Source: Tetramitus jugosus (taxonomy: Eukaryota; Protista; Heterolobosea). From it: a stretch of 64,000 bases of DNA. The first letter of the stretch is position 1. Each line of letters begins with the position of its first letter. Below, piece after piece: positions 1 to 11,940 of the stretch. The DNA is taken from NCBI GenBank assembly GCA_937625935.1, contig OW569362.1, forward strand, positions 1 through 64,000, written 5' to 3'. Under the pieces are notes generated by a model. It saw nothing but the letters and a program-made list of their open reading frames with translations. It ran no database searches and was not told the DNA's origin. Made by a program: the position numbers and the translations under genes.

Positions 1-823
1 CCAAACCCAAACCCAAACCCAAACCCAAACCCAAACACCCAAACCCAAACCAAACCCAAACCCAAACCCAAACCCCTAACCCAAACCCAAACCCAAACCC
101 AAACCCAAACCCAAACCCAAACCCAAACCCAACCCCCAACCCAAACCCAAACCCAAACCCAAACCCAAACCCAAACCCAAACCCAAACCCAAACCCAAAC
201 CCAAACCCAAACCCAAACCCAAACCCAAACCCAAACCCAAACCCAAACCCAAACCCAAACCCAAACCCAAACCCAAACCCAAACCCAAACCCAAACCCAA
301 ACCCAAACCCAAACCCAAACCCAAACCCAAACCCAAACCCAAACCCAAACCCAAACCCAAACCCAAACCCAAACCCAAACCCAAACCCAAACCCAAACCC
401 AAACCCAAACCCAAACCCAAACCCAAACCCAAACCCAAACCCAAACCCAAACCCAAACCCAAACCCAAACCCAAACCCAAACCCAAACCCAAACCCAAAC
501 CCAAACCCAAACCCAAACCCAAACCCAAACCCAAACCCAAACCCAAACCCAAACCCAAACCCAAACCCAAACCCAAACCCAAACCCAAACCCAAACCCAA
601 ACCCAAACCCAAACCCAAACCCAAACCCAAACCCAAACCCAAACCCAAACCCAAACCCAAACCCAAACCCAAACCCAAACCCAAACCCAAACCCAAACCC
701 AAACCCAAACCCAAACCCAAACCCAAACCCAAACCCAAACCCAAACCCAAACCCAAACCCAAACCCAAACCCAAACCCAAACCCAAACCCAAACCCAAAC
801 CCAAACCCAAACCCAAACCCAAA
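1..823. repeat. Telomere, (CCCAAA)n on + strand = (TTTGGG)n G-strand; left chromosome end
   Basis: About 137 tandem CCCAAA hexamers run from base 1 to 823. The C-rich strand is at the 5' end, as expected for a left telomere. Variant units occur only in the first ~140 bp. Confidence 0.97.
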
Positions 824-1814
824 TCAAATTCCTTCTCAAAAATCAAAATTTTCATCCAAATTCAAAATAGAAACAATCTATCATCTAAAATATGATCAAA
901 CAAGATTAATGGAAGTTAAAATTACTCAGTTCATTTCTATTTCCATCGCTTGACATTCACTCATGAGTATTTGTCGAAAATCGAAAACTTCTCATTAAAT
1001 GCTCAACATCTGGAAGGATTAGAGGCAATCAAGCGAGTCAATACACGTTTAATGAGTAATCATTGCTCTTTCTTTTCAGTTATGACGGGTTGGGTCTGGG
1101 TATTCAACTCTGCACTCAAGAACAACACAAAGTTTGAATTCTCATTCTGTCAGGGTTAATCGCTCTCAGAAGAACAATTTTTCCAAAAGACTCTCAGTCT
1201 ATTACATTCATAAATATGAATTGTCATTCAGAAAAGCTAGTAATCTGTATTTCTGACCTGTTGGATCTGGGATTTCAACTTTAAACTAGATGCAGATTTG
1301 AAACTTCACTATTTCACTGTCTTACAGGATTTTACGTAGAAAAGTCTCATTACTAGATAAAACATCTGATTCTACAGTGATTATTTAATAAAATCTGTCT
1401 ATTCTATCCAGAAAAACACTAAATCAAGTCTGTCAAAAATTCTGAAAAATCAGGTACTCAGAAACTGAGGCAAAAATTATAGCTGGAAGAAAATCATGTT
1501 AAAAATGATCAAATACTGTCTCAATATCCTGATCCAAACTAAAGAAATCAAGTCTCACTCTAATGTCTTAACTCCAGTACAGGATCAAAATCGACAGAAA
1601 TCTATTGCAGTTTTAACACTGTTGCAGATGAAAATCTGTTAAATACAGCACAGATATATCGGCTCTACGAGCCGATAAAGCTCAAATCGAGTTGAAAACC
1701 TCGCCAATCTCTTCACCTCAACCAGCTGAAGCTCCTTGAGCAATAAAAAATCTCAAAAAAAAAATTGCCATATAAGGAAATCGTTTCCTTAGGTTGGGGA
1801 ATCCAGGATGTATC

Positions 1815-1834
1815 CCCAAACCCAAACCCAACCC
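1815..1834 (+). repeat. Internal telomere-repeat seed, left of the YR gene
   Basis: CCCAAACCCAAACCCAACCC in the same orientation as the telomere. Its 14-mer CCAAACCCAAACCC (1816-1829) recurs at 4579-4592. Confidence 0.9.
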
Positions 1835-2340
1835 TGTCCTCTCCCCTTCTTTATAGTCCCGATTCTTCATCGGAATAAATTGGTTCAACGAATGAAAGGT
1901 TCACGGTCCAGGACCGTGGAACGGAAAAATGAGAACCAACGCCTGTGGGACTAAGAAAAATAAAAATCTCAAAATAAACAGAGAGTTCAACCAAAGTATC
2001 AGAAGATCTAACGGAGTTCAGCTGATTTGAAGATGCTTCACGCTCGTCGATGATGAACGGGTAAATAAGGAACGGTTGGAATTAGAGAGGTTGAAGATGA
2101 AGAGTGACAGAGATTGAGCCGTTGTAGTTGGACCTCCTTGATGGATGACTGACACATGAGTTGTCAAATGATTCAACCAATCAACACGTCAAAACAACCG
2201 TTAAAGAAAATCAATGAGTTGACCGCAAAGCAAGTTGACCACCAGTGGACCAAGATAAAAGAATAGAAAATAGGCCTAGAAAACAACCCAAAAAAACACA
2301 ATCACACCATAATATAATAACTCTACTCTTACTTGTTACT

Positions 2341-4476
2341 ATGTCTGCTACTACTGCTGTTACTGTTTCTGCTGCTGCTAAATCTCACTCTGAGGCTACC
2401 TTTGAGGTTACCTGCACTAATTTGTTAAAAGCTCTTCAAAGAATGGATGATCATGATGATTATGATCCTGCAGAATTGGACGATGTCAATGAAGCTGTAG
2501 ACTTGGAGTCAACTGTTGACAGAACCATTGCTGATTCTGATATGACAATGTTGAACGACTCTGTCAACAATTCAAGATCAATCAGAGAGTTGGAATTCAC
2601 TGACATCAATGATTCCTTCAGAGGTGGAGCCGATGAAGACTTGTTTCCTCAGGTTGCTTTTGGTTCTATTGGTGAAATGTCAAGATTGGACGAGGCTGCT
2701 GTTTCTGTTACAGCAAGCATCTCTAACACTCAGTATGCTCCGGCTACTGTTCAATTGTTCATCTTTGCGGAAAGAAGATACTTTTCATTCCTGAAGGAGA
2801 TGGACTCCAAATTCAAAGATTTCTACAAGTATCAAGCAACTCCATATCCAATGAAGAAGCTTACTTTAATGATGTATCTCTACTGGCTTAAAGTCGACAA
2901 AAATTACAAGTTCTCCACCATTCAGAGTACTTTCTGCTATAGTTTCTTGGCTTTCCTTTTCAAAACAAAGAGGGACAGAAATTTGAGAGAGGAATTCCCT
3001 CTTGATATCAAGAATGCTCTGAGAGCATTGCTTAGAAAGTTTGGCAATGATAAGTTCAAGGTTGAACCTCTGATGAATCCTGATTTGGTGAAATTAAGAC
3101 TCTTGTGTGACCAATCAACTGATGCCGGTGCAAGATTGGATGCTCTCTTGGCTCAAGGCAGAGCAAGAGGTCTCAGAGCTGATTCATTTGAACATGTTCA
3201 ATTGAACCATTTAACTTGGACAAAAACTGTTGTTGACAACAAGATTCGTCTCTGTGTTGATATGCATATAAAGAAAGATAAGATCCTCTTGCCGTTCATG
3301 TGGAAACAGAACCTACTTGGTTGGACCAATCTCAAAATGTGTCCTAATATCGCATTGTTGATTTATTTGGCTGATGTTAGACAAGTGTTTAAAGCTGGTA
3401 GTGCTGCTCAATGTCTGATCGAGGGTAAATTTCAGTTGAGAAAGAGAGCAAGAGATTTGCCATTGTTCACTCCACTTGGGAAGTCCACAACATGGTTGAA
3501 CAAGGATATGAGTAATTCGCTCAAGGCTCTCTCTGCGACTATTGGGAAGAGATACTCCACAAGATCCCTAAGATCTGGTCTAGTTGTTACTTGTTTATTG
3601 TCCAGTAGAGTCGAAAACAACGGAGTCTTTGATGATAGAGTTGCTGATACTCTTGCTCATTTTGTTCATTGGAAGAACAAAGAAAGTCTCAAGCCCTATG
3701 ATAGGTGGATTACTCAGTACTTCTCTTCAATCAATTCTCTTCAGGAACCTTCAGAGAGAGTTGAATCTTTTAGAACACTCTCTCAATTGGCTAAAGATAT
3801 GGGATTTTTGGAGGAAGATGCTCCAATTGCGACAGTTCCTGAAAATTCTCATGTAACTGATCCAACTATTCTCAGATCTCATATGTTCCATGAAGTGACA
3901 AATGGAAAGAGAAAGAAGTGGACTGCCAATGTTAAGAAGTTGAGAGCACCAAAGTATTTCAGACTCTATCAGAGAAGAAATGACTCCCTATTGGATGAAT
4001 CTATGAAGGAAGATAAGAGTGGAAAGGATAGAGCATGGGCATTGTATTGGGGAAGAGTCTGTATTCAGGAAGCAAATACAGACAAAAAATGTCAACAAGC
4101 ATTGAAAGCAGACAAGCAATATCAAAAAGAGAAGAGAAGTGATAGAAGATATCAAATCAAAAAGATCTATGGTGGAAATTCTCTCATCATAAAATGGATG
4201 AAAGATCCCGAAGTTCAAAAGTTCATTGACCAAGAAGAAAAACTCATGTTCATGAAAAAGAATGAAAAGAGTAAAACCGATGTTCTTACTCCTGGTACAT
4301 TCAAGAGAAAACTCAGTGCTTTGAAGAACAGAGAAAAAGAAGAATATGAAGCAATAAGAACGAAGTATGAGAAACTTAAAGACGATTTGGAACAAGAATA
4401 CAAGCTTTACAACCAAGAAGAAGAGATTGTCGAAGAACTGGAGATGGAAATGATCTACATTTCTGATTGTGAATAA
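2341..4476 (+). CDS. Tyrosine recombinase (integrase family; Crypton/DIRS-YR-like). First ATG at 2341; frame open from 2245
   Basis: Catalytic motifs appear in order: GLR(311)ADS, HIKKDK(343-346), CPNIAL, YSTR(440)SLR(443)SG, H475-W476, and Y485 in ESLKPY (numbered from 2245). A helical core-binding-like region precedes them (YAPAT...YFSF...YLYWL...STIQS). The C-terminus is basic and coiled-coil. Confidence 0.88.
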   Translation: MSATTAVTVSAAAKSHSEATFEVTCTNLLKALQRMDDHDDYDPAELDDVNEAVDLESTVDRTIADSDMTMLNDSVNNSRSIRELEFTDINDSFRGGADEDLFPQVAFGSIGEMSRLDEAAVSVTASISNTQYAPATVQLFIFAERRYFSFLKEMDSKFKDFYKYQATPYPMKKLTLMMYLYWLKVDKNYKFSTIQSTFCYSFLAFLFKTKRDRNLREEFPLDIKNALRALLRKFGNDKFKVEPLMNPDLVKLRLLCDQSTDAGARLDALLAQGRARGLRADSFEHVQLNHLTWTKTVVDNKIRLCVDMHIKKDKILLPFMWKQNLLGWTNLKMCPNIALLIYLADVRQVFKAGSAAQCLIEGKFQLRKRARDLPLFTPLGKSTTWLNKDMSNSLKALSATIGKRYSTRSLRSGLVVTCLLSSRVENNGVFDDRVADTLAHFVHWKNKESLKPYDRWITQYFSSINSLQEPSERVESFRTLSQLAKDMGFLEEDAPIATVPENSHVTDPTILRSHMFHEVTNGKRKKWTANVKKLRAPKYFRLYQRRNDSLLDESMKEDKSGKDRAWALYWGRVCIQEANTDKKCQQALKADKQYQKEKRSDRRYQIKKIYGGNSLIIKWMKDPEVQKFIDQEEKLMFMKKNEKSKTDVLTPGTFKRKLSALKNREKEEYEAIRTKYEKLKDDLEQEYKLYNQEEEIVEELEMEMIYISDCE

Positions 4477-4578
4477 AAATCATCATTTTTTCTTCATCCG
4501 TTCAGCACTGCCAGCTGGCGCTGTCAGTGCAATGATAGCTTCCTGACCTAATCTCTCCGGTGGAGTGCTTGTGTAACA

Positions 4579-4592
4579 CCAAACCCAAACCC
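4579..4592 (+). repeat. Internal telomere-repeat seed, right of the YR gene
   Basis: CCAAACCCAAACCC about 100 bp after the YR stop codon, preceded by a hairpin at 4505-4530. Confidence 0.88.
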
Positions 4593-4762
4593 CGTTTATT
4601 GGATCATCACATGTCTATCGATGCCAGAAGCCGTCAAGCGATAAGATATACTACGTCGATATCCATTCGTTATTCTGTAACTGTCTAGATTATCTAGGAA
4701 ACTTTGGTCGTGTATGTAAGCATATTAATGCCTCCCTTGTTCATTTTGCAGTAGAAAAAGGA

Positions 4763-6951
4763 ATGTATGGTATTGAAAGGAATGGCTACGAGTTTCTTCA
4801 AATCATGAAAAAAGTAGTTAATTCAGGATCCGATTCCCGAAGCCAGTCAGAGAATAGGGTTTATGTCACATCAGATAGATTAGGTGCTCCGAGGTCCTCT
4901 ATTAATAAGGCAAGAAAGTTTAAACCTAGAAAGAAAACTGGGAGAAAGAGATCGAATTGTCTGCAAGTGAATGACAATATTGGTGTATCCGTTGAAAATG
5001 TTGTCGGTATGAAGCGAGATCAAGATGGAGCACTGTTGTATCTGGTTATTTTGAATAGTCAAGAAGTATGGGAGCTGGCTCAAAATATCAACGAGCTTGA
5101 TCTTATTGAAGAAGTGCTACAAGATGTTTATGATGTTTATATGAGCCTGAATGTTTGTTGTTCTCAGACTATCTGCATCATTGAAGAGGTTTTGTTCGAT
5201 GTTGACTCATATTGTATGAGAATCACTGGAAGAGAGGAATACATGGACATAGATGATCCTTACAAAGTATCCTTGTATAAGTTTTTTCTCATTTTATGGA
5301 TCTGGAATTCGTCATTGAATAAAGGGTTTACTTGTCGGGTTTTTTCGACTTCGGGGATTTCACCCAGTTTGTGGCGGGTTATCCTTTGTCGGGGCTTTTC
5401 TGCGGAACGTCGGGTTTTGTTAATTTTCAGTCTGGAATTAATGCATAATGTTTATCATCCAGCAGCAAGTGGAGAATCGCTGGATATTGTTGTCCAGAAG
5501 TGTGACAGGGCTTTGAAGACGGTGGAAGAAATGAGAGAGCTCACTGTTAACTTTAGTAAGGGTCTGATTGGTGTCACAAAGGCTACATACAACTCTTTGC
5601 TGCTCAATCTTGCTGGATATACACTAATTCTGACAAAGATGAGTGTATATTGTTCTTGCATCCATCTAGGAAGCGCAGTAAGATGTATAACAAGCAGCGT
5701 CATTATATAGATTTTGTCCCAGTGGAACATAGGAATTCTACTCTTGATGAGCAAATTTCAAAGTTGCTGAAAGCATTCACAAGTAGTATGTAATAGAGAG
5801 CTGTAGAACTTGCTGAAATATTTCATATGCCCAAAGTGAAAGTGCTCAGAGACAGTTATTATGGAGCACGTCTCAATGATCTAGGTAAATTGATTCAAAT
5901 GAGAAATACACCTGCTCCACTGAACAAATCTACTACTAGGCCATTGTCACAATATGAAAAGAGCAGTACCTCTCAGATTGCAGTACTCACACAGAACATA
6001 ACAGATGTTCAGTCAAATAGAAAACAGTTATTCAACAGACCAGTTCCAGAATTTGAACATACTGATATTGCTATGGTATTTACACCCATACTCCAGTACA
6101 TAATATCACCATAGAGCAACTGAAGTCTGCACCGTCACCACTATCTGTATTCAGAGAGTATATGGTTTAATTGAAGTCATTGAATTCAGATAAGGTCGTA
6201 CTCGTAGCACACTTTGGAACTGGTGCAGATTTCCCTAAACTGTTCAGGACACTACACAGTCTGGGCATCAAACTGGATCTAGATCTGGAACTAGCTGACA
6301 CTAGATACACTCTAAAGAAATATCTGAAAGGAGGCAGCAATACACTCAAGCTCACAGAATTGTATCTTAATCGAGTGTCCAAGGAAGGTTACAATGCTCA
6401 TAACTCTTTGAGTGACAGTATTGCGCTGAGACAAGTTTTACGTTCTATTGTCACGGATATTGATCATGAGAATCAGAGAGCAATATACGAACGGTTCCTG
6501 GAAGATGTAACTGCTAAATCTAAAGAAAAATACCACCGATTAATATGTGAAGTTCCTAATCCAGGAACCGTTCGTATATTGCTCTCTTGATCCTACTGCA
6601 GTTGCTCCAGACGGATACATGTGTGTGAAGAAGAAACGTAGACGGGCTTCTAAGAGAATAAAAATATCAGATGATCAAGTAGATGAAGTATTGTATGAGG
6701 AAGATTATCGTGGATTTGATGCATCACAAGCTATTCACACTCGTACCAGATCTGCCACAAAGAAACGAGCATGGAATGAACTGCAAGAAGACTGGAAAGA
6801 GAATGCAGAAGATGGTCACCATGATTACTGCTACAAATGCAATATTGGTGGTGATATTTTGATGTGTGTTGGTTGCAATCAGTCTATTCATTCAGATGAA
6901 GTGCCATCTGATGACTGGTATGCACTCAATTGGACAATTTCACGAGTATAG
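4763..6951 (+). pseudogene. Fragmented (or spliced and decayed) gene with chromo-like, DEDDh 3'-5' exonuclease and PHD-finger segments
   Basis: VENVVGMKRDQDGALLYLVIL..VWELAQNI is chromodomain-like (~4990-5110). VLVAHFG..DFPKL...DT...LKLTELY...AHNSLSDSIAL matches DEDDh ExoII/ExoIII (6171-6590). HDYCYKCNIGGDILMCVGCNQSIH..VPSDDWY is a truncated PHD (~6820-6920). The pieces are split across frames by stops and frameshifts. Confidence 0.65.
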
Positions 6952-7281
6952 ATTCTGACACTGAATTTGAAGAGCAAGATGCTTATGATCATGAGAGTGA
7001 TGTATGTTTCTTTATTTGAAAATGAATTGTTTGAAGTAAATTTTGGCAGAAACAATATCTTTTCCATACAACCATCGCAAGCACAAGATTGCTCATTTAT
7101 TGCACTTGTTTTGTGAGCAACGACCCGTAGGGCATCTTTCACTCTTGTTGTCCCCTCGTAATGTACAAATTCCCCATTCAGCTAATTCTGTCGTAGCTTG
7201 TTTGGTTAGGGTGTGTGTTACTATGCATACATGCTCTAGTTCGAATCTCATCCATGGCAAATCAGGCCAATGGAGATGGCA

Positions 7282-7985
7282 TCACCTTAAAATTTTTCGT
7301 TGTGTCCCCCTGGGAGAGAGACTTCCATTCTCGATAAACTCAGTGAAGCTAGTTGTTGAATGAAATACACAGCGCTTGGTGTATAGATACCAGAGTAATG
7401 CTAACACAGGACAAGAGGAAAGAGTCCCTGTTCCGTAGATAGTTTGCTCTCTTGGTTCCGAGAGAAGCACTTTGTCTTTTACAATCTTCGTAATACAGGC
7501 AAGCTTGGAGTTGACACGGAAAAATTTCAGATGACGCAAAGTAACTGCAGCATAGGTGTCTTTGACCACTGGCACGACCAAACAACAAGATTATTAATCT
7601 GGATTCAGCCTCTGAATAAAAGTTCAACTTTGAACACCAAATTCGAAGATCTTGATTCAGTAGGGGTGCAACCTTCTTTGCCATATTTACGAAGAATGGC
7701 ACGCAATATATTTTGTATGTCACTGCCGAATTCCTTCTTAGGGTCGCCTCGGTTGGTGTCCCTGAGGTGGTTACTCAAACTGTTCGCAAAGGTATCGCGG
7801 ACAGTTTTATTACTATACCTCACCTCAACCCTCATCTTGAACAAGAAAAGCAAGAAGGTTGCTTTCTTGATTGGAAAAGGAACACTGAAATACAGAATCC
7901 TGCTTCATGTCTTCCCAAAACATTAGATAGTTGCGCTCCGCATACTCACGTACCTTAGATGTGTTTGGTGCTAGTCCAAAGCTTC
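7282..7985 (-). pseudogene. Frameshifted paralogue of the tyrosine recombinase (YR copy 2); C-terminal catalytic half not found
   Basis: Successive minus-strand frames align to the intact YR: LAPNTSKVREYAERNYLMF~YAPATVQLFIFAERRYFSF; VPFPIKKATFLLFL~TPYPMKKLTLMMYL; KEFGSDIQNILRAILRKYG~EEFPLDIKNALRALLRKFG; KVAPLLNQDL~KVEPLMNPDL; GRASGQR~GRARGLR; KIVKDKVLL~HIKKDKILL; CPVLALLWYL~CPNIALLIYL. Confidence 0.88.
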
Positions 7986-9036
7986 AAGTTGGTTTTCAAA
8001 TGTAGTGGAGTTGGAATGTGGCCTCAAGTTGGTTTTGAGCCAAATCTAGCATAGGAACAATCCTGGTTATCCTGTTAACTCGCTTGTAATGTGGACCCCC
8101 ATCGGTGACACAAGCGGCGCCACGTCCTCTTTGGATTCTCGAGGTGATGGTGGTGACACTTAGTTAGCTTTGATGTTAATTACAACAGTCGTGCTCTCAG
8201 TTGATTGATGTATGATTCAATCAAGCCTATGGTCAATAGTGTGGCGCTCAGTCGGTGGATGAGTAGGACTTCTTTACGTTGTTGTACTGGCGATAGAGCG
8301 TGGTGCATACAACCACGATGAGGAGTACTTGGTTATGTTGCTGGTGGCAGGGATGTTGTTGTGGTCTCAGTCAATTGAGGGGAAATGCTTTGACGGTGGG
8401 TGCAGTCAATGAAGGTGACGCTCAGTCGTGTGTGCTTTGTTTGTCTCAGTTGTGGTGGTTAGAATGGTGCTGTACTTGATGGCTTTTTGTTGGTGAGAAA
8501 TGAAGCAATGAATAGCAACACAAACACCACCATGTTGTTGCCAGTCTATTGGCACACTGATAAACGTGTTATTGGGGGCCGATCGGCTGTCGACAGGCAA
8601 CTGTTTTGATGCTGCCAATCAGATTATGATGTGATATTTCGCAGACAGAGAGCTGTCATACTTGAATTTGGATCCTTTTGCTTCTGAGGAAGCATGTTGG
8701 AAGAAGTTCCCTTTATTTTGCTTCTTGTCGATCAATGAAGCTGTTCCATTCACCTCACAACAGTTGTAAACATACACTACGAGAATGTTCAGAGCTTGTC
8801 ACTTGTTTTTTTCCGTTTTGAATGTCGGTGACCTAAATTTCGACTGAATTGCTTGTCGAATTGTCGCTGTACTCCCAACAACCAACAACGACACCATCCT
8901 CCTCCAACACCCACCACCAACCATGCCAACAATTTAAAAAGTGTCATTCCATTTTTTTTGCGATCATAGGGCAATCGGAAAGAAGAGCACCACAAAATCT
9001 CCACAAAAGAAAAAATCAGCAAAGACGACGAAAGAA

Positions 9037-9174
9037 GACAATTCTTACGCTCGGAGCACTGCCAGTAAAGTTATTATTGCTTTTTGCAAGACAAAATTTC
9101 CTGACTTTGCAAGATATCAAGTAACAGTCTTTCCCTTAAAGAAACTTACATTACAAATGTACTTTTACTGCTGA
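9037..9174 (+). pseudogene. Short fragment of a third YR paralogue (N-terminal domain)
   Basis: DNSYARST...KFPDFARYQVTVFPLKKLTLQMYFY matches NTQYAPAT...KFKDFYKYQATPYPMKKLTLMMYLY of the intact YR. Confidence 0.8.
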
Positions 9175-9769
9175 TCTTTCAACCAACCTATCCAACTCCT
9201 CCAGGAGTAGATGTGAACTTCTTAGTTAGGAGAATTGTATCAATTTGAACCAGTTGATAGTGATGTTGTACCCATTTCGTTGGAATGACAAAAGAACTTT
9301 GATTTTAAATAAATTTGAGTTTGATTTGTAAAAAATGAAAAAGTTTTAGTTTTTTAGTTTTGAGTGAGGGATGAGCTTTTTTGTGTCATCTCAATTTTGC
9401 CATGAAGAAAGAACGAAAAAAGAAAAAAGCCCAAAAAAATCAAAAAACAATCAGAGTACGAGGAAAAAACTGGTCCAAAAGAAAGGGGAATCCATGCCCA
9501 ATTTTTGGAAAAACCGAGTTCAAGCCAAGCTGTCAAACCAAGCTTCCTCTCTCCTTTGCAAGGAGCAACCAACACCCAAGAAGTTTCTTCAAACACTTTC
9601 CAAACAACGTTTGCTCGAGCGGAGTATAGACCGAAACTCCGCATGGATACAAGCACTGAGCCATGAAATTGGATCAAATATTAATAAAAACTTTTATTTT
9701 TTGGCAACCTTGTGTGGCTTCGGATTGTTTAGCTCGCTGCCAGTTCTCTTGTTGGTTTGCACCACCAAC

Positions 9770-10830
9770 TCATGCACGATCTTGCAGAGATGTGTTGGGC
9801 GTCTCTGTCAACAAGGTGAGATTGATGTGATTCTCTATATGAGAGCTAGAGTAGGTACTTGTAACCCAGAATGGGAAGGTCTTGAGATCCTCCAACTTCT
9901 CAATGCCAAGAGGTGCTGCCAAGATGGATGCCATTTGAGAAACAGTCACCTTGTTGTAGGCTTGTGTGAGTTTGAGGAGGAGTTCACCCACACGAACGTC
10001 CTTTAGGAAGCCTTTCACCTCAGTGCCTTGAGTTTCTCTTCCTTTCAACAGTTGGAAGAGATCCTTGCCTTCCTTTGCCACCTCCTTTCTTCTCATTGCA
10101 TACCTATATTTAATCCTTCTTGTACCAGTAGCTTGTTTCCGATTATCATCTCCATTTTCTCTCAGCTTAATAAGGTGTTGTCTAATTCTGGAAGGCATTC
10201 TATCCTGAGACCACAATTCCTTCTTAATATTATCATCAATTGTAGAATGACTATGTTGAGACATGACCCAATAGGGGAAGGCTTCTAAAGCGGTCATACT
10301 TTCTACCCTCAATCTTCTTAAAATGGAAGTAGTCTCCAAATTTGAGCTTCTCTCATTGAAGACAAGTGTTAAATGGCCTAAGAACTCACCGACTCGGATC
10401 TCTCTTAGGGAACTCTTCAATTCCGATCCGATCGGATCTGCACCCTTAATGGTTCGGAAAAGATTCGCACCCTCCTCTCAGGTCTCCCTTACGTAAGAAG
10501 GCAATGATGGACACGTGTTTTCGTCGCTCAAACTCCTGATCACTCATTTTGGCCATCTGATCAACCGTTTCTGGACAATGGGGAGGCCTTTCCTCAATCT
10601 CCACAATATCCAGCCAATTCAAAGCCTTCTTTACAGACTCACTTGGTGGAATTTCAATTATTCACACAGTTCAGACAGCTTCTCAATCTCTTGCCTCATA
10701 CTATTGAGATTCAATAAAGTATCTCTTAGTTGGCTTGTAAGGTTACTATTGGAAGTTTTCTCTTCCTCCAATTTTTTCTTCAAGTCTTCAATCCTTGCTC
10801 ACCTTCTTTACAAGTGCTGTTAGCCAAGAG
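9770..10830 (-). pseudogene. Decayed gene with a coiled coil and two tandem copies of an ~100-aa unknown domain
   Basis: Copy 1: EEGANLFRTIKGADPIGSELKSSLREIRVGEFL...LEAFPYWVMSQHSHSTIDDNI. Copy 2: KEGKDLFQLLKGRETQGTEVKGFLKDVRVGELL...LKTFPFWVTSTYSSSHIENHI. An upstream coiled coil (IEDLKKKLEEEK) is separated by stops and a frameshift. Confidence 0.65.
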
Positions 10831-11469: not shown

Positions 11470-11940
11470 AATTTTCATGTATTGGGAGCATCCAGTGATA
11501 GTAGATCTTAAGACCCCCGATGGAGGAGTCTGAAAGTTATTATTCATATTCAAAATTTATTCACTTTGGAGGCAGGGGTACAATTTAGGAGTTTTTTGTA
11601 AACAACTAGCCCAAAAATTTACCGTTACACGGATTCAATATAATATTATTGCCTACAATGATTAGATTGATCATTTGTGTTGTTTGATGTATATGAACCT
11701 CCTGTACTTCCCGGGAGCATCCAGATATTATATTCACCTCTGACACCCTCCCTACCTGTTTTGAATAAATTTGAATAACACATTTTCCTGTAAATTCGAA
11801 CGTTACATTAATTCTCCTACTATGATTGGGATTAAGAGACCCCCTTTGATTAAAATATTGAATAAATTTCTCAGACCCCCTCCCTAGGGGGTGCGTAAGA
11901 AATAATATCTAGACGCTCCCCCCACCCGTGAATGAGAATT
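11470..11940. repeat. Degenerate inverted/direct repeat cluster (foldback or MITE relic)
   Basis: 11470-11550 is an imperfect reverse complement of 11855-11940. GGGAGCATCCAG occurs at 11484 and 11713. The reverse complement of 11901-11920 matches 11713-11732 at 17/20. Confidence 0.65.

Follow-up and report, generated by a model that had tools for sequence, protein, structure and literature searches.

Elements known to attach to telomeres are retroelements, among them HeT-A/TART, SART/TRAS and Athena/Coprina/Terminons, and the Y′ elements of Saccharomyces spread by recombination. HeT-A and TART of Drosophila spread by terminal retrotransposition (PMC5537684). Athena, Coprina and Terminons are endonuclease-deficient Penelope-like elements of bdelloid rotifers and fungi that sit terminally with the 5′ end outward, and their structured 3′ end is followed by short reverse-complement telomere repeats (PMC8557442, PMC6431247). 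Their copies are 5′-truncated, capped by telomere runs and arranged in head-to-tail stacks, and Terminons carry accessory ORFs in addition (PMC8557442, PMC6431247).

We analyzed a 64-kb stretch of DNA, referred to as the window herein, at the left end of contig C19 of the Tetramitus jugosus genome, where a tyrosine recombinase (YR) gene lies between two identical telomere-like 14-mers. A preliminary description had read this arrangement as a mobile element that lacks a reverse transcriptase (RT) and uses the telomere repeat as its attachment core. Our analysis indicates instead that positions 1835-4592 are one unit of a head-to-tail stack, which was most likely added end-on to the left chromosome tip, probably by way of RNA. 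The architecture of this tip is of the known Athena/Coprina/Terminon kind: units of YR subfamily I are terminal with the 5′ end outward and with reverse-complement repeats at the 3′ end, and their copies are 5′-truncated, telomere-capped and stacked. What looks new is the YR cargo. Unlike Athena, Coprina and Terminons, the YR unit has no Penelope-type RT of its own and no detected hammerhead; the accessory genes listed for Terminons include no tyrosine recombinase, and the host is a heterolobosean amoeba. Since it lacks an RT, the YR unit could count among the Penelope-like terminal elements only as a non-autonomous or cargo member.

The tip also resembles Saccharomyces Y′ elements and Drosophila HeT-A/TART, which are likewise subtelomere-only stacked units with one long ORF and telomere-type sequence between them. 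However, the Y′ ORF encodes a helicase and the one here a recombinase, and the recombinational spread of stacks, which we do see, does not define membership. HeT-A and TART are non-LTR elements with poly(A) and their host lacks telomerase, whereas telomerase-type repeats cap the ends here.

A stack of units at the left end of C19

The T. jugosus genome uses the standard genetic code and is dense in long ORFs. The window opens with a terminal array of (CCCAAA)n on the + strand, so that the G strand reads TTTGGG, a candidate for the telomere repeat in another heterolobosean, Naegleria gruberi (PMC3622300). From the tip inward, this telomere is followed by a non-coding unit (the T unit), the YR unit and older subtelomeric DNA. 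Units were compared across about 30 of the 112 contig ends and in genome-wide tables. The features of the locus are as follows.

1-820, + strand: terminal telomere array, (CCCAAA)n
821-1834, + strand: T unit, 1 kb, non-coding; its 5′ end is discrete and lies at the telomere, and its conserved 3′ end runs into the left 14-mer
1815-1834, + strand: 20-nt 3′ tail of the T unit with the left 14-mer, made of telomere-register repeats and the variant AACCC; outside the YR unit
1835-4592, + strand: YR unit, a 5′-truncated copy with leader, YR ORF, 3′ tail with palindrome, terminal motif and 14-mer
1835-2134, + strand: leader module
2341-4476, + strand: ORF of 711 aa for a predicted Cre-like tyrosine recombinase, called from invariant columns, profile match, fold model and dN/dS
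4505-4530, + strand: imperfect palindrome with 11-nt arms, a 4-nt gap and a conserved pyrimidine-pyrimidine mismatch
4571-4592, + strand: 3′ terminus of the YR unit, the motif GTGTAACA and then the right 14-mer (4579-4592)
4593-10234, + strand: older subtelomeric block, duplicated at the left end of C52 (98% identity), where its first position corresponds to 4607
7297-7877, − strand: partial, degenerate copy of a diverged YR paralogue, oriented oppositely (about 30% identity by tblastn, with profile matches)

The T unit is identical (100%) to a copy at the left end of C12 and shares 83-89% identity with copies at the left ends of C2, C8, C16 and C17 and the right end of C22. Reads cover it 10-60 times as deeply as single-copy DNA, and 5′-truncated T copies have a common 3′ end at 1832-1835. 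The T unit and its tail occur at no fewer than nine other chromosome-end junctions with no YR behind them. The partners of the T tail comprise the YR unit at 1835 in the window, YR position 3409 at C49, truncated T copies and, at C52, unrelated DNA.

The left end of C52 was considered as an empty allele or haplotig and rejected, as what it shares with the window is a paralogous block of 6 kb, carried by a contig at least 290 kb long. The junction there lies 14 nt further in than seed-by-seed recombination predicts, with 4593-4606 missing and AACCC present. The apparent empty site, a check proposed in the preliminary description, is thus a paralogous end. Two joints that might have been taken for excision junctions were likewise discarded: the joint of 1834 to 4607 is the C52 paralogue and that of 1833 to 3409 is the C49 copy. 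A 4592-A-1810 joint is present among the contigs of one groundwater run.

The telomere-like 14-mers are tails of separate units

A scan of the window confirmed the pattern that had first drawn attention to the locus. The 14-mer CCAAACCCAAACCC flanks the YR gene at 1816-1829 and 4579-4592 on the + strand, in the orientation of the terminal array, and hairpin-capable inverted repeats adjoin the left copy (1652-1682 and 1773-1791) and the right copy (4505-4530). In addition, a G-rich stretch at 1792-1800 is able to pair with the left copy. Outside the array there is no third CCAAACCCAAACCC in the window, for which shuffled sequence gives 0.03 matches, and these two seeds, as we call such short telomere-like tracts, are the only telomere-register runs at least 11 nt long within the 64 kb.

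The two seeds do not bound one element as a pair. The left seed belongs to the neighboring distal T unit: an identical tail follows an identical T 3′ terminus at seven junctions, each with a different proximal flank. The YR unit in turn has the right seed as its own 3′ tail. Short telomeric seeds are moreover common regardless of the YR: in the 30 sampled ends, more than 10 unrelated unit families have a conserved 3′ terminus followed by a short C-strand seed. Many units of these families are 5′-truncated and lie in head-to-tail stacks. Among interstitial seeds in these ends, which are 11-43 nt long, 51 have the C-strand orientation and 3 are reversed; across the genome, seeds sit at contig ends on the strand appropriate to the end, with one exception. 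A seed belongs to the unit on its distal side, as the built-in 3′ tail of that unit, and a reading of the seeds as a duplicated attachment core left by crossover of a circle is not supported.

The YR unit and its copies

Copies of the YR unit with 75-77% identity lie at the right ends of C18, C25 and C28, and fragments lie at C49, C12 and the right end of C19. The C18 copy reaches about 107 nt further 5′ than the copy in the window, to a terminus common to C28 and C3. At C18 and C28 this native 5′ end lies directly against the telomere, and at C3 against the tail of an RT unit. The full copies at C18, C25 and C28 all start about 107 nt upstream with the telomere directly adjoining, have no 5′ seed and differ from the window in their left boundary. 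The proposal that copies are bounded by the same seed on both sides therefore does not hold. Truncation points fall at 1835 (C19), 3409 (C49) and 4198 (a soil metagenome contig), and the truncated copies are capped by seeds. The leader shares 96-97% identity with the C18 copy, whereas the coding region shares only 55-80% when identity is binned along the alignment.

The 3′ end is constant. RTGTAAYA followed by the seed is invariant over three diverged 3′-end subtypes in nine copies; the same terminus is found at C18, and solo 86-bp ends are found at C52, the right end of C12 and C49. A degenerate pattern of the palindrome matched the genome 20 times and the control 0 times, with 18 of the 20 matches subtelomeric and the strand always that of unit polarity. 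The conserved, lox-like palindrome is a candidate recombinase site or RNA hairpin. We saw no covariation in the RNA structure of the YR-unit tail; the conserved core of the palindrome is invariant.

The YR ORF is the sole ORF of the unit, which besides the seeds has no terminal repeats, LTR or TIR. A Pfam search found no RT inside the unit, which bears out its description as RT-free. The genome search also upheld the expectation that copies are confined to chromosome ends: all 41 genome matches of the YR family are no more than about 8 kb from a contig end, as a discrete multi-copy unit found at tips only. Orientation is fixed within YR subfamily I, and a second subfamily (II) has the opposite orientation. 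The only named source of YR homologues is Willaertia, where they also lie at contig ends, two of the three oriented the opposite way, and no C-strand tail follows these Willaertia genes. The reversed orientation of subfamily II and of these two homologues, together with the missing Willaertia tail, counts against the end-on addition that we favor.

The recombinase

The ORF at 2341-4476 is the first long ORF inward from the telomere, and the earlier reading of this first intact gene as a YR stands, given its profile match to Cre, Cre-like predicted fold and conserved catalytic residues. Searches with the single sequence gave only a weak SAM-like match in Pfam and nothing in PDB, and both a profile and a fold model were needed. 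The family profile matched Cre at E 4e-5, aligning R279 with Cre R173 and the G-W...Y region with Cre W315-Y324. The AlphaFold model (pLDDT 85.4, pTM 0.74) returned Cre-DNA complexes as the top 30 Foldseek matches (E down to 4e-7 over 360-380 aligned columns); XerH, XerA, IntI and lambda Int came next. The catalytic set would comprise R279, K312/K314, R408-x-x-R411, W444 and Y453. R279 and K312/K314 are invariant among 26 diverse homologues and the remaining residues among 7 full-length sequences; Pfam Phage_integrase is matched by 6 of the 26 family members. The dN/dS of the YR is about 0.18 (0.17-0.19). Intact copies stand apart at dS 1.3-1.7, so their subfamily has not undergone a recent burst, a point against the end-on addition that we favor. 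By profile, predicted structure and conservation, the ORF is a genuine, intact tyrosine recombinase, with a two-domain fold predicted to consist of a core-binding and a catalytic domain.

Over both domains, Cre of phage P1 matches best in structure and in profile, and in the YR as in Cre it is Trp, not His, that precedes the nucleophilic Tyr; as with loxP, a palindromic candidate site adjoins the YR gene. In contrast, identity to Cre is 12-14%, the YR carries extra sequence of about 110 aa at the N terminus and 230 aa at the C terminus, Arg replaces the first His of its H-x-x-R motif, and the candidate site has 11-nt arms with a gap of just 4 nt. The nearest Atlas clusters carry NDC10_II, DUF3435, DUF3504 or ALOG with Phage_integrase, which is the Crypton/DIRS-type set. 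As in Cryptons and Starship 'Captain' DUF3435 elements, the YR is the sole enzyme ORF, with no terminal inverted or long terminal repeats. Unlike Cryptons, YR-unit copies are restricted to the last few kb of chromosomes and are not dispersed, the flanking repeats are unit tails and not crossover footprints, and copies are 5′-truncated with constant 3′ ends, which is no Crypton feature. DIRS elements combine a YR and reverse transcription in one life cycle; however, they encode RT/RNase H and YR together and have split or inverted terminal repeats as well as an internal complementary region, whereas here the RT and YR are in separate units and the RT is Penelope-like, which places the YR unit outside DIRS.

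Penelope-like RT units on other chromosome ends

Sister units at C3, C10, C17, C48 and C9 encode an endonuclease-less Penelope-like RT. The subtelomeric RT ORF has its 5′ end distal, 5′ truncations and its own 3′ seed; at C3, where it spans 1300-3411, a clean head-to-tail stack is found. The ORF has 283 homologues with RT domains, some with a C-terminal GIY-YIG domain, and its nearest Atlas clusters are from rotifers. All RT matches in the genome fall in units other than the YR unit or at internal LINE-like loci. No Rfam hammerhead family was found by the tails of the YR, T and RT units at E up to 1-5, where a divergent fold is possible, and no other Rfam family was found at unit tails. The lack of an RT in the YR unit and of a hammerhead, which is part of the described Athena/Terminon 3′ end, counts against an RNA route.

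Origin of the stack

The reading that we favor, end-on addition through unit tails, would proceed as follows. The YR unit would have joined an exposed chromosome end through its tail, its outer (5′) end would then have been worn back, the T unit would have joined there likewise, and telomerase would have capped the T unit. Unit RNA ending in reverse-complement telomere repeats may pair with the G-rich chromosome 3′ end, which would prime reverse transcription of that RNA by an RT acting in trans from the Penelope-like RT units on other ends of the genome. Since sister units encode such an RT, a known RNA-based route to the stacked-tail architecture is at hand. Recombination between ends would spread whole stacks. 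The YR itself is probably conserved cargo, and the seeds would form with no need for it; our best guess is that it would act at the conserved palindrome, in site-specific exchange or resolution between tips.

The layout could also have arisen as a patchwork at the DNA level. Critically short telomeres would invade interstitial seeds on other ends, with break-induced replication copying everything distal, or they would fuse to broken DNA, with the YR as a passenger subtelomeric family and no RNA step. Copying between ends is ordinary subtelomere behavior in yeast and humans, and such copying fits the identical multi-unit stacks (C25 with C28, C3 left with C10 right), the 100% match of the C19 T unit at C12 left, the 6-kb block common to C19 and C52 (98%) and the leader of C19 and C18, the high identity of which resembles gene conversion. 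Nevertheless, a telomere remnant on the recipient would not recreate the donor's 20-nt tail, including AACCC, at seven different non-telomeric flanks, and a patchwork leaves unexplained both the precise 3′ and precise 5′ terminus in each of more than 10 families and the same layout in Penelope-like RT units. Taken jointly, we regard the two forms of this explanation as unlikely.

Two further explanations give the YR the leading part. According to one, which we consider improbable, the YR joins ends itself: it would cleave at the tail or palindrome, keep the 3′ phosphate covalently bound and pass it on to the telomere, where the C strand has its free 5′ end, and a DNA unit would in this way be ligated end-on. 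The non-coding units with similar termini would be non-autonomous substrates of the YR. Tyrosine recombinases and type IB topoisomerases are known to carry out such transfer to foreign 5′-OH ends. The polarity fits, as the sense-strand 3′ end of the unit meets the 5′ end of the chromosome C strand, RTGTAAYA with the seed and the strand-specific palindrome are kept in three diverged YR-unit subtypes, and junctions beside non-telomeric flanks are precise. However, the case is purely inferential, the palindrome is absent from RT and T units, subfamily II and the Willaertia genes do not share the layout, and a Penelope-like route explains the architecture in organisms without such a YR. The other is the RT-free circle of the preliminary description, in which an element crosses its own telomere-like core with telomere repeats and leaves direct repeats. 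An intact, conserved YR as the unit's only ORF, a family at chromosome tips only, seeds on either side in the window and the fixed orientation of subfamily I are all in keeping with it. Yet the left seed is the T unit's, no 5′ seed precedes the other full copies, whose left boundaries also differ, and non-coding and RT units end in seeds too. Insertion across an array of about 800 bp predicts proximal tracts of all lengths, where only 11-43 nt are observed, and the C52 junction, lacking 4593-4606 and retaining AACCC, is not a seed-by-seed product. No circle junction was found among the contigs, which is weak evidence as contigs cannot reveal rare circles. Such a circle is, in our judgment, highly improbable.

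Apart from how the stack arose, there is some chance, though a low one, that the YR is the enzyme of a DNA-level, telomere-end-specific mobile system, attaching units or swapping and resolving tips at the palindrome or tail. If so, Heterolobosea would have a chromosome-end-specialized YR system alongside Penelope-like terminal retroelements; a literature search found no system of that kind. In either case, a protist with ordinary telomerase-type repeats builds its tips from stacked units, one abundant type of which carries an intact YR under selection. Were the YR to act on tips, site-specific recombination would be linked to end maintenance or subtelomere shuffling, and even as cargo it brings an enzyme class and a eukaryotic supergroup that are both new to the Terminon accessory-gene idea. 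The 2.9-kb unit, with its defined ends and candidate 26-bp site, offers a compact and testable system.

Lastly, the identical stacks at C25 and C28 and at C3 and C10 show DNA-level copying between ends, which alone could spread units and counts against the RNA route that we favor.

The chromosome end and its first gene

The 26.35-Mb assembly comprises 56 contigs (C-numbers herein), with the window at the left end of C19. The genome uses the standard genetic code, with long ORFs densely packed, and sequence nearly identical to the window is found in groundwater and soil metagenomes. TTTGGG is the reported candidate telomere repeat in the heterolobosean Naegleria gruberi (PMC3622300). The features discussed are as follows.

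1-820, window left end: telomere array (CCCAAA)n
821-1834: T unit, non-coding, with the left seed (a short telomere-register C-strand repeat) at 1816-1829
1835-4592: YR unit, a 5'-truncated copy, with a tyrosine recombinase (YR) ORF and the right seed at 4579-4592
7297-7877, minus strand: degenerate fragment of a diverged YR paralogue, ~30% identity to protein P0003
C3 left (L025), 1300-3411; also C10 right, C17, C48, and C9: endonuclease-less Penelope-like RT unit with its own 3' terminus plus seed, and 5' truncations
C13 left (L035), 779-4058; also C13 right, C9, C42, C41, C15, C43, and C24: second YR subfamily

Profile, fold, and catalytic residues all uphold the preliminary description in that the first gene after the telomere is an intact YR (ORF 2341-4476). 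While a single-sequence Pfam search gave a weak SAM-like match and nothing else, exhaustive profile searching recovered 78 relatives. A 26-sequence profile matched Cre in the PDB (E 4e-5) over the core-binding domain up to the first catalytic Arg, with the G-W...Y region matched separately, and 6 of its 26 members matched Pfam Phage_integrase. The AlphaFold model (pLDDT 85) returned Cre-DNA complexes as the top Foldseek matches (E 4e-7, ~370 columns). Residues R279 and K312/K314 are invariant in 26/26 sequences, as are R408-x-x-R411, W444, and Y453 in the full-length set. The three intact paralogues (C19, C18, and C28) gave dS values of 1.3-1.7 with dN/dS of 0.17-0.19, hence the protein has long been under purifying selection. 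The named clusters closest in language-model features are NDC10_II, DUF3435, DUF3504, and ALOG plus integrase, which belong to the eukaryotic Crypton/DIRS-type set. Willaertia magna supplies the sole named homologue of the gene. Together with the TTTGGG repeat, this homologue points to a Naegleria/Willaertia-like amoeba as host.

The seeds are the tails of separate units

As first described, the 14-mer at 1816-1829 and 4579-4592 occurs nowhere else outside the array (0.03 expected by chance), and inverted repeats adjoin both copies. The 64 kb contain no other telomere-register run of 11 nt or longer. Both seeds had been read as the attachment core of a telomere-targeting YR element, which our comparisons with other ends do not support. 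The T unit has a copy of 100% identity at C12 left and others, adjoining the telomere, of 83-89% identity at six or more further ends; shorter copies share a 3' end at 1832-1835, and only their 5' start varies. At seven junctions an identical 20-nt tail, off-register AACCC included, comes after the T 3' terminus, and the DNA beyond differs each time; the left seed is therefore the tail of T. The right seed is the tail of the YR unit itself: the C18 copy has the same ending, solo 86-bp YR-unit ends with the same tail are present at C52, C12 right, and C49, and RTGTAAYA plus seed is kept across three diverged 3'-end subtypes.

Nor are seeds special to the YR unit, an outcome that the preliminary description had itself listed as counting against its reading. 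Across ~30 ends, 51 interstitial seeds of 11-43 nt had C-strand orientation and three were reversed, and these follow at least 10 unrelated 3' termini, each internally conserved, with varying proximal flanks. Genome-wide, seeds lie at contig ends on the strand appropriate to the end, with one exception. Just upstream of the tail, G-strand-like stretches that can pair with the C-strand seed occur in T (GGTTGGGGA, window 1792-1833) and in the C18-type YR tail (GGTTGGGTATGGGTTT, L002). This pairing potential suggests that the 3' end may fold back.

Boundaries of the YR unit

The YR unit is the most terminal sequence at C18, C25, and C28. Copies at C18 and C28 have a common 5' terminus abutting the telomere, and the C19 copy begins ~107 nt inside it. 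Since these full copies start at the telomere, ~107 nt further out, the element is not bounded on both sides by the seed as previously thought. At C3, this 5' terminus is directly preceded by the 7-nt tail of another unit. Truncated copies are capped directly by the tail at 3409 (C49; the same joint is also present as a contig joint) or by telomere repeats at 4198 (a soil metagenome contig). Close relatives in groundwater and soil metagenomes have other junctions, one joining 4592 to 1810 via a single A. The leader (1835-2134) is 96-97% identical between C19 and C18, whereas coding regions are 55-80% identical. This shows mosaicism among YR copies and points to recent exchange or very strong constraint on the leader, within which the palindrome CACGGTCCAGGACCGTG also sits.

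At C52 left, the tail of T is joined directly to the equivalent of 4607. We rejected C52 as an empty site or allele, as its homology is a paralogous block of 6 kb with 98% identity. Seed-by-seed recombination also fails to account for it, with 4593-4606 missing and AACCC retained, contrary to expectation. The window end and C52 read as a pair of paralogous ends to which different units were added following unequal wear. The paralogue fragment at 7297-7877 points telomere-ward within their common block.

Terminal stacks and the route of unit addition

Weak RVT_1 matches at several ends led to a subtelomeric RT ORF of 700-1270 aa. Its C3 left and C10 right copies are 100% identical, and those at C17, C48, and C9 are 5'-truncated. 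Homologues of the ORF with RT-associated domains number 283, and several of them have the C-terminal GIY-YIG of Penelope-like architecture, a domain that the ORF here lacks; its Atlas neighbours are rotifer clusters. From the tip inward, C3 left consists of telomere, an RT-unit 3' fragment, a 43-nt seed, a full RT unit, a 7-nt seed, a YR-type unit from its native 5' end, seeds, a mini-unit, and a seed. Athena, Coprina, and Terminons have been described with the same structure: they attach to G overhangs, have reverse-complement telomere repeats right after a 3' fold, and form head-to-tail arrays with accessory ORFs and 5' truncation by short telomere runs (PMC8557442, PMC6431247). With one change, the motif GTGGAGTGTTTG of the RT tail is also present at window 4560-4571, 8 nt before the seed of the YR unit. 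Some 60 LINE-like RT ORFs (up to 1330 aa) form clusters in chromosome interiors, clearly separated from the Penelope-like RTs of the subtelomeres.

What lies at this tip is a YR-carrying unit within an Athena/Terminon-like terminal stack, whose units were very probably stacked end-on at the chromosome tip. Within end-on stacking, the sequence comparisons lean slightly toward an RNA route. Because a constant tail adjoins arbitrary flanks, the incoming molecule would have had a discrete 3' end including the tail, and an RNA or otherwise discrete-ended intermediate is favored over a model in which the recipient's telomere remnant invades a donor seed. As a Penelope-like RT is present in the genome, the most economical reading would be trans-mobilisation of the YR unit by this RT from other ends. 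Several observations count against or limit an RNA route. Rfam detected no hammerhead in the YR, T, or RT units; identical multi-unit stacks on different ends show that DNA-level copying operates too; and the leader mosaicism limits it likewise.

Distribution and possible role of the recombinase

DNA copies and fragments of the YR unit are located at contig ends, and all 41 family matches from a genome-wide profile search, ~16 of them with open frames of at least 590 aa, lie within ~8 kb of one. The expectation that copies would be confined to chromosome ends thus holds. In Willaertia magna, the distances of three YR homologues to a contig end are 0.1, 1.4, and 7.4 kb, and one of these ends finishes in TTTGGG repeats. 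Two of the three point toward the telomere side without tails, as does the second subfamily in orientation, whose 3' end is telomere-ward and whose open frame continues into TTTGGG repeats. Given these opposite orientations and the tailless Willaertia genes, the tip location of the family predates the tail architecture and extends beyond it, which leaves room for a possible end-related role of the enzyme itself.

An imperfect palindrome ~50 nt upstream of the tail, strand-specific and kept in all YR-unit subtypes, has 20 genome matches (18 subtelomeric) versus none in the control. No covariation was seen in it; it is a plausible candidate recombinase site. The observation behind the attachment-core reading is real, the reading itself is unsupported, and the recombinase in this terminal stack is of potential interest.

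In the second subfamily, a coiled-coil ORF precedes the YR gene, and the proximal side carries arrays of a palindrome, GCCCGTAAACGGGC, together with a 390-bp unit ending in a seed. On Willaertia magna contig 118, the YR homologue P0011 is immediately preceded, in the same orientation, by a 744-aa gene (L049, 1481-3761) that may be its tandem paralogue. The contig start at C21 left (L042) has ~400 nt of almost pure poly-C (130-555), preceded by AT-rich repeats, distal to a telomere array of 317 nt; this is probably a read-end or assembly artefact. Lastly, a 208-bp dispersed repeat (window 11713-11920) with >35 copies at 85-97% identity, internal and subtelomeric on many contigs, looks like a SINE or MITE.
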